Assembly (NCBI GenBank): GCA_013115145.1
Contig: JAAPAO010000241.1
Span: 1 to 48,419 of the forward strand
Length of the DNA: 48,419 nt
From: Perkinsus chesapeaki ATCC PRA-425
Taxonomy: Eukaryota > Protista > Perkinsozoa
Reading direction: 5' to 3'
In this document: piece after piece, positions 9,945 to 16,528 of the stretch
Layout: each line of letters begins with the position of its first letter
Position numbering within the stretch: the first letter of the stretch is position 1
The notes under the pieces: model-generated
The model's database searches: none
Seen by the model: the letters and a program-made list of their open reading frames with translations, nothing else
Told to the model about the DNA's origin: nothing
Position numbers and translations under genes: made by a program

Positions 9945-10026
9945 TGAGTGCTGTGGGGTTCGAACCCACGCGGACACTGTCCAGTGGATCTTAAGTCCAC
10001 CCCCTTAACCACTCGGGCAAACACTC
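9945..10026 (-). tRNA. trnL-TAA: tRNA-Leu (anticodon TAA), intronless, long variable arm
   Basis: Minus strand reads GAGTGTTTGCCCGAGTGGTTAAGGGGGTGGACTTAAGATCCACTGGACAGTGTCCGCGTGGGTTCGAACCCCACAGCACTCA. Acceptor stem GAGTGTT/AGCACTC, anticodon stem GTGGA/TCCAC, T-loop GTTCGAA. Confidence 0.97.
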
Positions 10027-10285: not shown

Positions 10286-11484
10286 TCACATACGTTTCTG
10301 TCGCTTATTAGACATTTTGTAATCTTGATGAGTACCAGTTTTCCTACCCCAGGACTCGCTACTGCCATGGTCGCCTTGGAACTTATTTTTTCGCTTCTGC
10401 GACTTCATTATATTTCGCTGGCGCTTATACTCAGGATCGTATTGGTCATAGTAAGTTAGAGGCAGCTCATGAACATCCTTAACCGCGAGAACGCCCTCCA
10501 TGTCAGCCATGGCAGACTGCATCTCTTCTGCAGTACAGACATCGCAACCGTTGATAAACCAAAACGAAGGAAAGGGGCTCGTTTTCGCCTCATCGGCGCT
10601 AGCTCGCAGATGCTTAGGGGTTTGATAAACTAAAGAAAAACAGTTGTCGATTCACCTCAAGCTTAGAATGGGATCGGTCAGACGAAAGAACAGGAATCGC
10701 AGAGTCTATTTGAATGGCTCAGTTTGTAATGCGCGGTCTCACCGTATCGCTTTTTGGGGGCCACGAAGAACATGCCAGACTGGCCAGGCATCGCAATTAG
10801 ATCCTTATAATAGTCCTTCATGTACACCCAGTTCGGGACTAACCACAACCAAGGTTTCCCCTTCTTGCCGACGAACGTAGCGAGTCTCGCAGGCTAAGGA
10901 GACGATGATAGAATCGAGCTGGATTCACGGTGATCGAGACAGCGACATCACGTCAGTTGATTACGATACTCGATTCGGTTGGCGCAACACTTACATGGTC
11001 TCCGCTGTAGGGTGGATTAGTGAGAAGAACGTCGAAATCGGGGGACTCGGCTGTGTAGAAATCTTCGCACTTGTTGTATACACTTTTGAAGCCAAGCGCC
11101 TCCAAGTTCGCAACAACAGCGCCATCACAGTAGTATCTGAGGGATACTACTCTTTTGTCGATAGGATACAGCCTCTACGGATCGTAGATCTTGAGCTCAT
11201 CCTTTGCCTTCCCTAGTTTCCTCGCTATTAGCTCCAATATCGGCGCAATATGGCCGTATCTGAAGAACTCACTCAACTCTGTCAAAAGGTTGTCGGTCAA
11301 CAGCATACGCTCTCGCGGGAGATTCAGCGTGATCTAGAGATTCTGTCGGGTACGGAAATGCCTTGGCCAGAACCTCTTCGACGGTCTCAGTGGTTGTCGG
11401 ACTCTCTGCCGTCGAAGCTTGATTATCCAAGGGCTTCTTTTGCTGCTTCTTATTCTTACGTCGGTTTGGCTTTGTTCTGGCCAT
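10286..11484 (-). CDS. Putative SAM-dependent amino-methyltransferase (NPPY motif; N6-adenine MTase-like), 5 exons, ~297 aa
   Basis: Exons 11484-11309, 11259-11179, 11136-10995, 10893-10743 and 10629-10286 join in frame through GT-AG introns. Motifs DHAESP, IYDPYYCDG, EDFY, FDVLLTNPPYSGDH, KTSPFPSFWF. Basic N- and C-termini. Confidence 0.8.
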
Positions 11485-11658: not shown

Positions 11659-14218
11659 TCATACTGCAAATTCATCTGGCAGGGAGCGAGTCGAAGATAG
11701 GTTGCAGCAGCCAGTGGAACATGTAGTAGCCTCCACGGCAAATTCAACTGCACTATGGACCTGAGAGAGTAAATAAACAAGATGACCACTATACCTGCTG
11801 CTTACGTCGGTGAAGAAGGGACGGTACATGTCGGACTTCTGAAATGACTCCGATGCCTTACGTAGTCTCTGGTCAATATGGGCATCCTCGAGACATTTAG
11901 CAACTTTACATTTACACGAGGCTAGAACTATAAAACGTCTGCCTTCGTAGCGGCTATGTACAACATCGATGAGGTCGCCAAGAGTGTCTATGCCGGTCGA
12001 GTCGATGAACGAGACTGCCGACATATCTATGACAACCACTTCGACATGGTCCAGCGAGACTTCCTCTAATATACGATCCTTGAAGTAATCGCTATTGGCG
12101 TACCACAACGGAGCTTGGAAGTCTAATACTACAACGCTTGGTATAAGTGCCAGAGCACGGCGCTTCTTGACCGGCACATACGTGATGGTACCGGGAACCC
12201 TACCAAGGCGCTTTATCTTGGTACGCATGCTTGAACGGAAGATGAAGACCAATAGAGTAATGCCAACTGCGGTTGGTACTGCAATCTGTATACCAGTGAA
12301 GACCACAAGACAGAAGGTAAGTATCCATACGATGAAATCTATGAATTGTGACATCTTGAACAACCGCAATGGAGCTCTAAAATCCACCATTTTCATCACA
12401 GCGACGACGACATTAGCAGCCAGCACGGCTTCGGGAAGGTAGTAGAAGACGGACGTCAGTAACAGCAGCACAATCGCTATAACGATAGATCTTACTATAG
12501 CAGTTACTTGTGTCCTGCCACCACATAGTATAGCGGCCGAGGTGTTGCACAAGGAGCCCATCATAGGGAAGCCTCCGAAGACCATTTGGGCACTGTTGGC
12601 AACACCAAGTGAGACGAATTCTCTATTTGGCGATATTGCCTTTCGGCCGCCATACTCTTTATATATTTTTTTAGATAAAGCTATAGACTCTAAGTATCCA
12701 GCAAGACTGGCACTCACGGCCGTCGGGATGAGAGAGACAAAATTCTCGCGCCAGAGGGACTCCCCGGGGAAGAGCGAGAACGGTACCGGGATTCCGCGCG
12801 GTATCTGAAAACAGCGCACAGTAAGCATCATTGGCGACGACAAGGCGACAACTCACATAACCGACTATCTTAATTCCATGCTCATCGTATTGTATGGCAT
12901 ACCCCAACGATATGGATAAGATGAGTGTCGCCAAGGCAGCGTACGGGCGGGTAAGCTTGAACCATCTCATAGTAAATATCTAAACGTAGGCAAGAGCTAT
13001 ACTCGGAAGGAAGTTGGAGATAGGGACTATTACAATAAGAAAAGCTATGCACGAGATGATCACTGTATAAGGGTTGATCTCGTTGAGATTGGTAAATATC
13101 TTAGCCAGAGCGCTTTGGACCAACGTGCTACTCTGGACGTCAATGCCTGAAGTACAGGGGCTTTGGGAGGAGACGATAGAGTCGATCATTCTTCGTACCG
13201 AGGAGCAGTTTCAGTTGTGAGCTGATCACAACCACTGCGATGGAGGTTAGCAGGGCTGACATCAATGGTCTTGAAAGGAACTTCACTATCCAACCGAAGC
13301 GAAGAGTTCCAAGACCGAGATACAAAACTCCGACCTGTGCAGAGGCAGCTGTCCCTTCAGGAAGCCCAGGGAAGACAACTACCATAATGCTTGTCATTAT
13401 TGCCAATGAGCCCTTGTCCTCCGGTGAGATGGGTAAACTCCCGAGGTGAGCTCCGACCAGGAGGCATGGCATAGCCATTGGACCAACGGTCACCAATGAA
13501 GATGATCCCTGAAAACATGAATTCTCCGGAAGCAGTTTTAATGAGATCTTTACTAGTAATGCATAGATAACAGGTGGCAGGATAACCGCATATAGGCCAT
13601 AGACCGGCGGTAGCGCTGCCAAGGAGGAGTAGGCCAGAGCTTGGGGTATCGTAATAGACGAAAGTGCTATAGCTGCTATTATCTCTGCTAAAAGATTCTT
13701 CCGCCAATCATACGGCAACCTATCGGCAAAGTTTGATATACCCAGCCCAAGCGCGTCGGGTACTACCATGCAGGAACCATGTCCTTCAAGAATCTCCTCC
13801 ACCACACACAAACGGCCTTACGCTTCCCAGTGCCTTTGAATCTCTTCCAGATGCCTTTATCGCGGCCGCCAGTGTTCAGAGCCTCCCTGCTCTCATGCGT
13901 GATGATGTTTGAAGTTGGACGCTGCAGCGAGCTGTCGTCTGGCTTATCCACTCCCAAACATAACGATTCATAACCATGAGAGATCTCCTCCAGAAGCGCG
14001 GCTTTCTCCGGTGATATTTTCCTGTACTGCACCGTTAGCAGCTGCAATTGCTGGCGAAAAAGCTCCAATCGCAAGGTGGAGTTATCCTCCAGGCAATTCT
14101 CCTGTGACCACATCACTTGTCGTTCAGATTCTTTTATATAATAATCGAGATCCAACGGTGATTGGGTCGGCAGGTCTAAGAGAGAGATGCCCCTCGGACT
14201 AAGATGCCAACCTACCAT
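11659..14218 (-). CDS. SLC26/SulP family anion (sulfate) transporter with C-terminal STAS domain
   Basis: IPQALAYSSLAALPPVYGLY, GSSSLVTVGP, NREFVSLGVAN, GGRTQVTAIV. STAS motifs FQAPLWYANSDYF and VIDMSAVSFIDSTG. Confidence 0.93.
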
Positions 14219-14842: not shown

Positions 14843-15525
14843 TTACATGGCACGCTTTTTCTTATGGTAGGGTGTCTTCACAGTGAGGCTTTGATGGATA
14901 TATGGTACCACTCCACCTAAGACAGATCATTACATTAGAGAGGAGCTGGTAGTGTTACCTCCTGCAATAGTAGCACGAATAAGTACATCAAGCTCATCAT
15001 CTCCTCTGATGGCCAGTTGTAAATGTCGTGGAGTTATACGTTTTACCTAAGACGTATGATGTGGCGACCTATTCGAGGCTCCGTTTACCTTTTGATCCTT
15101 GGCAGCATTGCCAGCAAGTTCTAAGACCTCAGCTGTAAGGTACTCCAGAATGGCGGCTGTGTAAACGGCCGCAGTTGAGCCCACTCGGCAGTTGGTCGTG
15201 GTGCGACTCTTCAGATAGCGTTGGACTCTTCCCACAGGGAACTGGAGGCCGGCTCTTGCGGATCTCGCCATGGAAGCTCCCTTGCCACCGCCAACCTTCC
15301 CTTTACCGCCATGAACCTTACAATGCACAATTAAATAGGACGTCACCAATAAGAATCCTCTCACCTTGGCGCCCTTGCCACCTTTGCCACCCTTGCCACC
15401 TTGAAGACCAGTGCTCTTGAGGCCCTTACCCCCGGCTAGAAGGAGACACGGTAACAAGACGTGGTACAACGCTCTTATCTGAACTCACCTAGTTGGGTAA
15501 CAACCGGAACGGACTGTGGCATCAT
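14843..15525 (-). CDS. H2A.Z: Histone H2A.Z paralogue 1 (multi-exon; start approximate)
   Basis: [79 protein letters not shown] (H2A.Z docking signature). GGK-rich N-tail. Confidence 0.9.
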
Positions 15526-15893: not shown

Positions 15894-16528
15894 CTACTTC
15901 TGGACATATTGCGGCATCGACATAGAAAAGGGTTGCTGACGCTGCTGCTGCTGTTGTTGTTGAGATGCCCCGAAGGGCTTCTTCTTCCCCTTCGATGGCT
16001 TCATGGCTAAACTCGAGTGTATTTGAGGTATAACACCACCTGATAATGCCCACAGTCAACTATAGTAGCTGAGAGTAGTGACAGGTCAAACCTCCAGAAA
16101 TGGTGGCCTTAATTAACTTGTCGAGTTCATCATCTCCTCTGATGGCCAGTTGTAGATGACGAGGAGTTATCCTTTTGACCTGATAAGAATCCTACCAGCT
16201 CCAACCACCAAGTAAGGCCACCTTGAGGTCCTTAGCGGCATTGCCGGCCAATTCCAGCACTTCCGCGGTAAGGTACTCGAGTACCGCTGCCGTGTAAACA
16301 GCGGCAGTAGCACCGACTCTCACATGAGACGTCGCTCTGTTCTTCAATTGCCGATACATACGGCCCACTGGGAACTGCAGCCCAGCTCTAGCTGATCTTG
16401 ATGTTGATCTCTTCACAGTGTGGCCGCCGCCTTTACCCCCACCGACCATCTAAAATGCTGACACTGTTTGCTACTGTTTTTGAGTGTTAGCGTACCTTAG
16501 TGGCCTTGCCGCCCTTACCCCCTGACAT
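15894..16528 (-). CDS. H2A.Z: Histone H2A.Z paralogue 2 with Gln-rich C-terminal extension
   Basis: [11 protein letters not shown] / ...[15 protein letters not shown]...RVGATAAVY...KDLK / [29 protein letters not shown] / [46 protein letters not shown]. Confidence 0.9.

Follow-up and report, generated by a model that had tools for sequence, protein, structure and literature searches.

The DNA analyzed here, hereafter the window, is a stretch of 48,419 nucleotides (nt) from Perkinsus chesapeaki ATCC PRA-425 (contig JAAPAO010000241.1, assembly GCA_013115145.1). On its minus strand, from position 11484 to position 10286, lies a gene of five exons and four introns, whose 894 coding nt (297 codons and a stop) specify a putative S-adenosylmethionine (SAM)-dependent amino-methyltransferase with an NPPY motif. 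A prokaryote-style list of open reading frames (ORFs) shows only fragments on this strand between 10286 and 11484. A hidden five-exon, 297-residue frame with four GT-AG introns had been proposed in a preceding sequence-only reading; this proposal was borne out to the exact length, and an orthologue in Perkinsus olseni has the same intron positions.

A spliced gene and its surroundings

All four introns, of 49, 42, 101 and 113 nt, start with GT and end with AG. Exon 1 (11309..11484, 176 nt) contains the start codon, a basic N-terminal tail (MARTKPNRRKNKK...) and a DHAESP motif at 11334..11317; it was delineated by tblastn with residues 1-63 of the P. olseni orthologue, P0152, and by a family profile (22-76, E = 2.5e-5). 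It is followed by intron 1 (11260..11308, 49 nt, GTATGC...TTCAG, phase 2), which is 41.7% identical to its P. olseni counterpart. A shorter, 37-nt intron 1, giving a 301-residue model, was ruled out by the P. olseni sequence and the common splice site; because the orthologue reads ...SPAKAYGHVGP... at this point, the acceptor was placed 12 nt further on. Exon 2 (11179..11259, 81 nt) encodes the helix that follows the N-terminal motif, and the first part of motif I (KIYDP); it was assigned from its translation and from an indel-free alignment with P. olseni at 74.1% nt identity. Intron 2 (11137..11178, 42 nt, GTAGAG...CCTCAG, phase 2) has an in-frame TAG after the donor; the P. olseni intron measures 63 nt and is 45% identical. 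Motif I, YDPYYCDG, is split after YDP by the junction of exons 2 and 3, so that exon 3 (10995..11136, 142 nt) begins with its remainder, YYCDG, and continues with EDFY and motif IV, DVLLTNPPYS, in which translation places the catalytic NPPY codons at 11018..11007. Intron 3 (10894..10994, 101 nt, GTAAGT...CCTTAG, phase 0; 146 nt and 48% identity in P. olseni) leads to exon 4 (10743..10893, 151 nt), which supplies the KPWLWLVPNW strand and the FFVAPKKRY hairpin, the latter with an R and a Y that are invariant or nearly so in the family; this exon rests on its translation, its single copy in the genome and the profile (153-206, E = 6.8e-14). Beyond intron 4 (10630..10742, 113 nt, GTGAGA...CTTTAG, phase 1; 143 nt and 49.5% identity in P. 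olseni), exon 5 (10286..10629, 344 nt including the TGA at 10288..10286) encodes SPFPSFWF, a C-terminal module (LPLTYYDQYDPEYKRQRN...) and a basic tail, as given by its translation and the profile (203-292, E = 4.2e-14). The motifs listed in the sequence-only reading (D-x3-SP, YDPYYCDG, EDFY, DVLLTNPPYS with NPPY at 11007-11018, and SPFPSFWF) are all present in the exon translations, and both ends of the protein are rich in Lys and Arg, as it had also noted.

The P. olseni orthologue is annotated as "hypothetical protein FOZ61_004970" and has 299 residues. When this protein was searched against the window with tblastn, residues 1-299 were covered, collinearly over the exons. A profile of 68 family members matched the P. 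chesapeaki genome at this locus only, indicating a single copy, and its four segments fall on the exons in collinear order with abutting ranges (22-76, 75-154, 153-206 and 203-292). In a genomic alignment with the P. olseni locus (L027), all four intron positions and their GT..AG ends are common to the two genes. The exons are 65-74% identical with one in-frame 6-nt indel, the introns 42-50% identical and rich in indels. Identity at the first, second and third codon positions amounts to 84, 87 and 44%, respectively, which argues for purifying selection on exactly this spliced frame. In addition, transcriptomes of other species (EukProt and MMETSP entries) contain homologues with complete ORFs. 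As judged from these comparisons, the locus is a real, spliced, single-copy gene whose frame is under purifying selection.

One could alternatively regard the locus as non-functional, that is, as chance ORF fragments, a pseudogene or the gene of a dead enzyme, and an ORF list that gives nothing but fragments would agree with such a view. However, the spliced frame has no internal stop, 20 of 20 family-invariant residues are kept, third codon positions stand at 44% identity versus 84-87% at the first and second, indels lie in the introns rather than the exons, and P. olseni has the same intron positions. We therefore give a non-functional locus next to no chance, as the sequence evidence already contradicts it.

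A tRNA-Leu(TAA) gene (9945..10026, minus strand; Rfam, 57.7 bits) lies on the same strand 259 nt past the stop codon, in line with the tRNA that had been noted about 260 base pairs away. The upstream neighbor (11659-14218, minus strand) is a multi-exon gene of the SulP/STAS sulfate-transporter type. Two H2A-type histone ORFs, both with N-termini rich in glycine and lysine, are situated at 15047..15469 and 16192..16449 (minus strand), about 3.6 and 4.7 kilobases upstream; the sequence-only reading had named them H2A.Z. This synteny is kept in P. olseni (L027:1-2540), with the SulP/STAS transporter and H2A upstream, and together with the orthology it agrees with a Perkinsus genome. The P. olseni annotation merges the SulP/STAS gene and a Histone_H2A_C match into one 879-residue product, which is probably a gene-model fusion.

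The methyltransferase starts with MARTKPN in the window (11463-11484, minus strand) and with MARTKQT in P. olseni, the latter being the very residues with which the histone H3 tail begins. No other family member among 341 sequences has a MARTK-type start. The MARTKQT start could be due to chance or could be a Perkinsus-specific mimic of the H3 tail.

Family membership, catalytic motifs and fold

A HMMER scan with the 47-residue exon 3 gave 773 cluster representatives at E ≤ 1e-3, the best of them 60-82% identical over the exon. In a word-index search with exon 5, limited to a length window that leaves out full-length kin, nothing was found. Full-length relatives comprise 220-500 residues and carry no precomputed Pfam domains, and nearly all named ones are called hypothetical or uncharacterised. 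Named members come from unicellular lineages only, namely alveolates (P. olseni and the dinoflagellate Effrenium), stramenopiles (Triparma, Chaetoceros, Chromulina and Phaeothamnion), the green alga Ostreococcus tauri, whose protein is named only after a PROSITE N6-methylase signature, and choanoflagellates (Salpingoeca rosetta, Monosiga brevicollis and Savillea). Further clusters, of chlorophytes and diatoms, came from the ESM Atlas. In either word search, no animal, fungal or land-plant name occurred in the top 120 hits, and with a choanoflagellate query the next matches after choanoflagellates were other protists. These observations are suggestive of a loss of the family in animals, fungi and land plants. 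We found no paper naming PTSG_07527, MONBRDRAFT_26429 or FOZ61_004970.

In a subgroup of longer relatives (P0001 and P0008), the catalytic domain is preceded by an additional N-terminal motif, LSDWLNP.H..(Y/F)W..LK..WK, and residues 61-108 of P0001 form a weak second methyltransferase-like region. One 480-residue member from a JGI metagenome (P0014) is labeled 'flagellum-specific peptidoglycan hydrolase FlgJ' by its source, apparently a mistaken annotation or the outcome of a merged gene call.

An alignment of 68 members contains 20 invariant columns, all of them kept in the window exons (in P. olseni numbering D53, E56, P58, D87, P88, C91, G93, D113, Y115, D123, N128, P129, P130, Y131, S132, P155, Y185, S203, P204 and W209). 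They comprise N, P, P, Y and S of DVLLTNPPYS and D, P, C and G of YDPYYCDG. They also comprise D, E and P of the exon 1 motif DHAESP, which is equivalent to the E-T/S-P motif of M.TaqI-type enzymes and stands in an unpermuted motif order. The N-terminal motif is separated from NPPY by 75-80 residues in the family, and NPPY from SPFxSFW by about 75, so that the catalytic core takes up just about 170 residues. The N- and C-terminal extensions are Lys/Arg-rich family-wide (K+R 20-25% overall, 37% in the last 30 residues).

Scans of single exons against Pfam, NCBIfam and PHROG gave only sub-threshold matches at the NPPY strand (Eco57I, MTS, PrmC and phrog_799), including one of exon 3 to the phrog_799 model at E = 7e-4. 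The Eco57I model scored 12-18 bits (cut-off 25.3) and N6_Mtase 10.7 bits (cut-off 20.4), neither reaching its threshold. In the PDB, neither a relative nor the family profile, used as sequence queries, found anything below E = 0.2.

For the fold, P0152 was modeled with AlphaFold2 and the family alignment (mean predicted local distance difference test score [pLDDT] 86.6, predicted template-modeling score 0.78). Block-mean pLDDT is 82-98, mostly above 90, for residues 61-270, which contain the core and the following module; it is 90-98 for residues 201-270 and about 75 for residues 271-280. An all-against-all structural search aligned model residues 49-247 with many class I methyltransferases at VIA Z scores of 9-11. 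The top ties include lmo1582, PH1948/METTL5, DIMT1/KsgA, MmeI, DrdV, METTL16, M.TaqI, ErmC', RlmJ, M.BseCI, type I HsdM subunits, Mtq2 and also a spermidine synthase, and neighbors of equal Z span methyltransferases acting on DNA, ribosomal RNA (rRNA), small nuclear RNA (snRNA), the cap and protein. Foldseek yielded E values of about 2e-4 and template-modeling (TM) scores of 0.3-0.36, with probability 1.0 to RlmJ, PacII and lmo1582. The model thus confirms a class I Rossmann methyltransferase fold, and together with the intact family-invariant residues it upholds the earlier assignment to the Rossmann NPPY amino-methyltransferases. As far as can be read from the model, adenine-N6 enzymes (lmo1582, MmeI, DrdV, M.TaqI, RlmJ, METTL16, METTL5, KsgA/DIMT1 and HsdM) are enriched among the structural neighbors, no single one stands out, and the fold is silent on the substrate.

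The alignment of the P0152 model to M.TaqI starts at chain residue 21, in a region where the E-T-P motif of M.TaqI is presumably placed. An N-terminal helix with an E-[ST]-P motif is a typical feature of the M.TaqI/EcoKI group, in which it positions the catalytic asparagine (Iyer, Zhang, Aravind; PMC4738411). The gamma-type or 'group 2' DNA N6-adenine methyltransferases (M.TaqI, EcoKI HsdM, Eco57I) share the linear motif order, the N-terminal E-T-P helix and the NPPY on strand 4 with the window protein. They also provide its best, if weak, matches (Eco57I, E = 0.004-0.04; PacII, a type I M subunit and BsaXI, E = 0.2-0.6) and reach VIA Z scores of 9-10 to the P0152 model. Unlike these enzymes, the window protein is far smaller, has neither a target-recognition domain nor an S subunit and stays below the curated cut-offs.

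Kinship with phage and virophage methylases

Viral contigs gave no match in a single-exon search, and in phages tblastn with exon 3 reached E values of 0.1-0.8 only. With the family alignment, a pattern scan of IMG/VR recovered 14 loci with viral ORFs of 165-264 residues, and a scan of prokaryotic genomes recovered five loci, including an archaeal ORF of 233 residues. The viral relatives match the phrog_799 "DNA methyltransferase" model at E = 1e-36 to 1e-37 (virophage copy, 2e-14), the eukaryotic orthologues at 1.5e-4 and 1.7e-6, over part of the domain only. When the eukaryotic and viral alignments were compared with hhalign, they matched at 99.7% (E = 1.4e-25, 149 columns). As this match spans from the D-x-x-E/Q-T-P motif to the ...WF hairpin, the two groups are homologous end to end.

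Phages bearing the gene include Thermus phages phiYS40 and TMA, Podophage Lau218, Prochlorococcus phages P-SSM2/5 and phages of Fusobacterium, Staphylococcus and Listeria (myophages in the latter two); the labels are predictions throughout. The viral copy nearest to the eukaryotic family, on contig L002 (IMGVR_UViG_3300017770_000391), has IYDPYYCSG, EDFY and NPPF. This contig is that of a virophage and carries genes for capsid proteins, a major one of the Sputnik type and a minor one of the V18/19 type, and its methylase lies between a C5-methylase-like gene and the gene of a ribonucleotide reductase small subunit (L002:2265-6117). On another contig, L003, the methylase lies beside an ORF that, read from the sequence by eye, is uracil-DNA-glycosylase-like. 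Structure matches in BFVD comprise small phage methylases, with TM scores of up to 0.63 of target length, and giant-virus PCIF1-like proteins.

A quick maximum-likelihood tree unites the 49 eukaryotic sequences with modest support (Shimodaira-Hasegawa-like approximate likelihood ratio test, 83) and places the virophage copy next to them as a long-branched sister, with the phage copies outside. The picture emerging from these sequences is that of one old eukaryotic clade and not of a recent capture by Perkinsus. A viral domestication specific to Perkinsus or to alveolates, as envisaged in the sequence-only reading, is at odds with the single group that the family forms in the tree and with its occurrence in alveolates, stramenopiles, green algae and choanoflagellates. 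Taken together, the weak model scores, the 99.7% hhalign match and the tree indicate that the eukaryotic family is homologous to phrog_799 but constitutes a separate clade.

Both sides share the D-x-x-[EQ]-T-P motif, motif I, the acidic D-F, [IV]TNPPY, KPF..LLP, R-[IV]-x-F and S.WF..AWF, and both are compact and devoid of a target-recognition domain. The phrog_799 phage proteins, of 165-260 residues, end straight after the core, whereas the eukaryotic proteins have some 10 extra residues behind the N-terminal helix, basic tails and, on the C-terminal side, a conserved module of about 70 residues; pairwise, the two sides are only 24-33% identical. The suggested resemblance to small phage or viral Dam-like enzymes thus stands as homology (hhalign, 99.7%), to phrog_799 instead of to Pfam Dam. 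Indeed, neither the exons nor seven eukaryotic relatives match Pfam Dam (PF05869), and the virophage copy scores a sub-threshold 15.9 bits against it (cut-off 28.1). We conclude that the window gene belongs to a eukaryotic branch of the minimal phage-type NPPY methyltransferases, a branch that is widely conserved but uncharacterised and has neither a Pfam model nor a solved structure.

Candidate substrates and place among adenine methyltransferases

To see which other methyltransferases accompany the window gene, its genome was inventoried by six-frame Pfam family searches of the 41.7-megabase assembly, which is fragmented. There were no matches to MethyltransfD12/Dam (PF02086) or N6_N4_Mtase (PF01555), and none to MT-A70 (PF05063) in a search that had no positive control. 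The MT-A70 blank is probably meaningful, because the eukaryote-only families PF10237 and PF12237 were found by the same tool, controls being equally silent. The matches comprise two loci of PF10237 (EEF1AKMT1/ZCCHC4-type; C1895:29095-29595 and C2183:68211-68567), one C5 DNA-methylase-type locus (PF00145; C138:655-1557), one PCIF1_WW locus (PF12237; C2307:27710-28114, E = 1e-31) and one METTL16-type locus (PF05971; C3433:3898-4677). Since PCIF1 and ZCCHC4/EEF1AKMT1-type proteins are encoded elsewhere in the genome, the window gene is none of these. This settles the comparison with PCIF1, ZCCHC4 and EEF1AKMT1 that the sequence-only reading had called for, the window protein also lacking a Pfam match to them.

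MT-A70 proteins (METTL3/14, METTL4 and AMT1) are, as is likely for the present family, eukaryotic adenine-N6 writers of prokaryotic or phage methylase descent. They are circularly permuted and carry DPPW, while the window protein is unpermuted, carries NPPY and has no PF05063 match, so that the unlikeness to METTL3/AMT1 remarked upon earlier is upheld. AMT1 is missing from animals, Dikarya and land plants (PMC12695648). PCIF1, the writer of cap-adjacent N6,2'-O-dimethyladenosine, belongs to the same broad Iyer-Aravind group with an NPP[FY] pocket, and Foldseek gave weak matches to giant-virus PCIF1-like proteins and to human and zebrafish PCIF1 (6irv, E = 4e-3, TM 0.29); the window protein, however, has no WW or helical cap-binding domain and no match to PCIF1 at the sequence level. 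Members of PF10237 (EEF1AKMT1, ZCCHC4 and oomycete DAMT1-3) are also compact [DN]PP[FY] amino-methyltransferases, but have DPPF or DPPY rather than NPPY, and neither the window protein nor its relatives match this family. Oomycete PF10237 members have been reported as writers of N6-methyladenine in DNA (6mA; PMC6211444). These oomycete DAMTs and the DAM domains of retrotransposons were considered as candidates and belong to different families. Thirteen eukaryotic clades of such methylases have been catalogued (PMC4738411), of which the CHLREDRAFT_205675 clade comes closest by its description; it has paired paralogues and CCCH/KH fusions, neither of which is seen in the present family.

We consider it fairly probable that the window harbors a single-copy nuclear gene for a 297-residue SAM-dependent amino-methyltransferase that likely acts on adenine N6, is bound to nucleic acid and belongs to an old eukaryotic family with phage kin. 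In such an enzyme, a compact core of about 170 residues, made up of the D-H-x-E-[ST]-P helix, motif I (YDPYYCxG), EDFY, NPPY and the R-Y and SPFxSFW hairpins, would be flanked by the eukaryote-specific C-terminal module and the Lys/Arg-rich tails. SAM would be bound at motif I and EDFY, and the target base would be flipped into the NPPY pocket, where its exocyclic amino group, most likely adenine N6, would be methylated. The R-Y and SPFxSFW hairpins, conserved from phage to eukaryote, may line the substrate cleft. The C-terminal module and basic tails may bind nucleic acid, and the tails might keep the enzyme there, in the nucleus or nucleolus; a nuclear location is what we infer from the basic tails.

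Several points weigh against this assignment. The gene model is based on sequence comparison, with transcript-level ORFs coming from homologues in other species, and the fold was predicted for the 299-residue P. olseni protein as a stand-in for the window protein. No target-recognition domain is seen beyond the core and the C-terminal module, and a Pfam scan of 96 long members for RNA-binding, chromatin and DNA-binding domains revealed no recurrent fusions, only four one-off domains that are probably merged gene models. No characterised member was found, in eukaryotes or phages. Moreover, NPPY pockets also serve guanine-N2, cytosine-N4 and glutamine-N5 methyltransferases, and HemK/PrmC and Mtq2 are among the weak sequence or structure matches.

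With regard to the substrate, we put RNA at somewhat below an even chance, and DNA on the one hand and protein or other molecules on the other at about the same, lower level. An enzyme that introduces N6-methyladenosine (m6A) or a related amino methylation into rRNA, snRNA, transfer RNA or mRNA is accordingly a real possibility, though one we would not yet bet on. The gene is single-copy here, its catalytic exon is 60-80% identical across supergroups, and the streamlined genome of Ostreococcus has retained it. Long Lys/Arg-rich tails on a bare catalytic domain are, in our view, typical of nucleolar RNA-modifying factors, and the family has such tails and no recurrent accessory-domain fusions. 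METTL5, METTL16, KsgA/DIMT1, RlmJ, Erm and PH1948 are among the top structural ties, and METTL3/14-type MT-A70 genes went undetected in the genome. On the other hand, no RNA-binding domain is seen, an apparent absence from animals, Dikarya and land plants would be unusual for a universal rRNA or snRNA mark, and the phage relatives are presumed DNA enzymes. The latter argue for a writer of 6mA in nuclear DNA, the main proposal of the sequence-only reading, which we regard as doubtful. Outside the eukaryotes, the closest kin of the family are proteins of phages and virophages that carry the annotation DNA methyltransferase and, on L002 and L003, lie in DNA-metabolism contexts, and with MT-A70, Dam and N6_N4 undetected, few other candidates would be left if 6mA were present. 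The restriction of named members to unicellular lineages furthermore resembles the loss pattern reported for the AMT1 6mA pathway (PMC12695648). However, we found no paper reporting 6mA in Perkinsus DNA, the 96 long members show no chromatin-reader or DNA-binding fusions, a target-recognition domain is absent, and the family coexists with AMT1 in green algae, which does not fit a simple replacement. In addition, ancient eukaryotic recruits of restriction-modification-type adenine methylases mostly act on RNA (background knowledge; PMC4738411), a track record that speaks for an RNA and against a DNA substrate.

Methylation of protein (glutamine N5, lysine or an N-terminal amine) via the NPPY pocket, as by HemK/Mtq2 or EEF1AKMT1, is unlikely in our estimation. 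PrmC/HemK models match weakly, at the motif level (E = 0.005-0.2), and Mtq2, at Z 9.4, ties with nucleic-acid enzymes; the HemK-model matches are, however, confined to the NPPY strand, the P0152 model aligns to M.TaqI from residue 21, the family is homologous to phage methylases, and the D-H-x-E-[ST]-P helix is a hallmark of the nucleic-acid adenine methylases of the M.TaqI/EcoKI group (PMC4738411). Even less credit, indeed very little, is due to the earlier alternative of a methyltransferase for the spliced-leader cap or a cap-adjacent adenosine. PCIF1-type proteins are among the weak structural matches, but the window protein lacks the WW and helical cap-binding domains, and a separate PCIF1 domain protein is encoded on C2307. 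Moreover, diatoms, green algae and choanoflagellates, which are not known to use spliced leaders, all have members of the family. The idea is weakened by this distribution and by the genome's own PCIF1.

To our knowledge, eukaryotic adenine methylation is explained almost wholly by MT-A70 together with METTL5, METTL16, ZCCHC4 and PCIF1. The usual writers of mRNA m6A and DNA 6mA would be missing from a eukaryote devoid of MT-A70 genes; if Perkinsus has 6mA in its DNA or internal m6A in its mRNA, the window gene is a candidate writer. The most far-reaching possibility, to which we assign only a small probability, is that, independently of MT-A70, the family constitutes a second writer of adenine-N6 marks on nuclear nucleic acid in eukaryotes. 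Such a writer might be as old as the last eukaryotic common ancestor and would either descend from the orphan methylases of phages and virophages or be common to them and eukaryotes. It would have been lost in animals, Dikarya and land plants and, in Perkinsus, would stand behind any DNA 6mA or mRNA m6A. If the substrate were a routine rRNA or protein site, the result would be a useful annotation and little more. Ostreococcus, diatoms and Salpingoeca are genetically tractable hosts of the family. Knowledge of the substrate would add a new writer of a DNA or RNA mark, or would show a phage-type minimal methylase adapted to host housekeeping.

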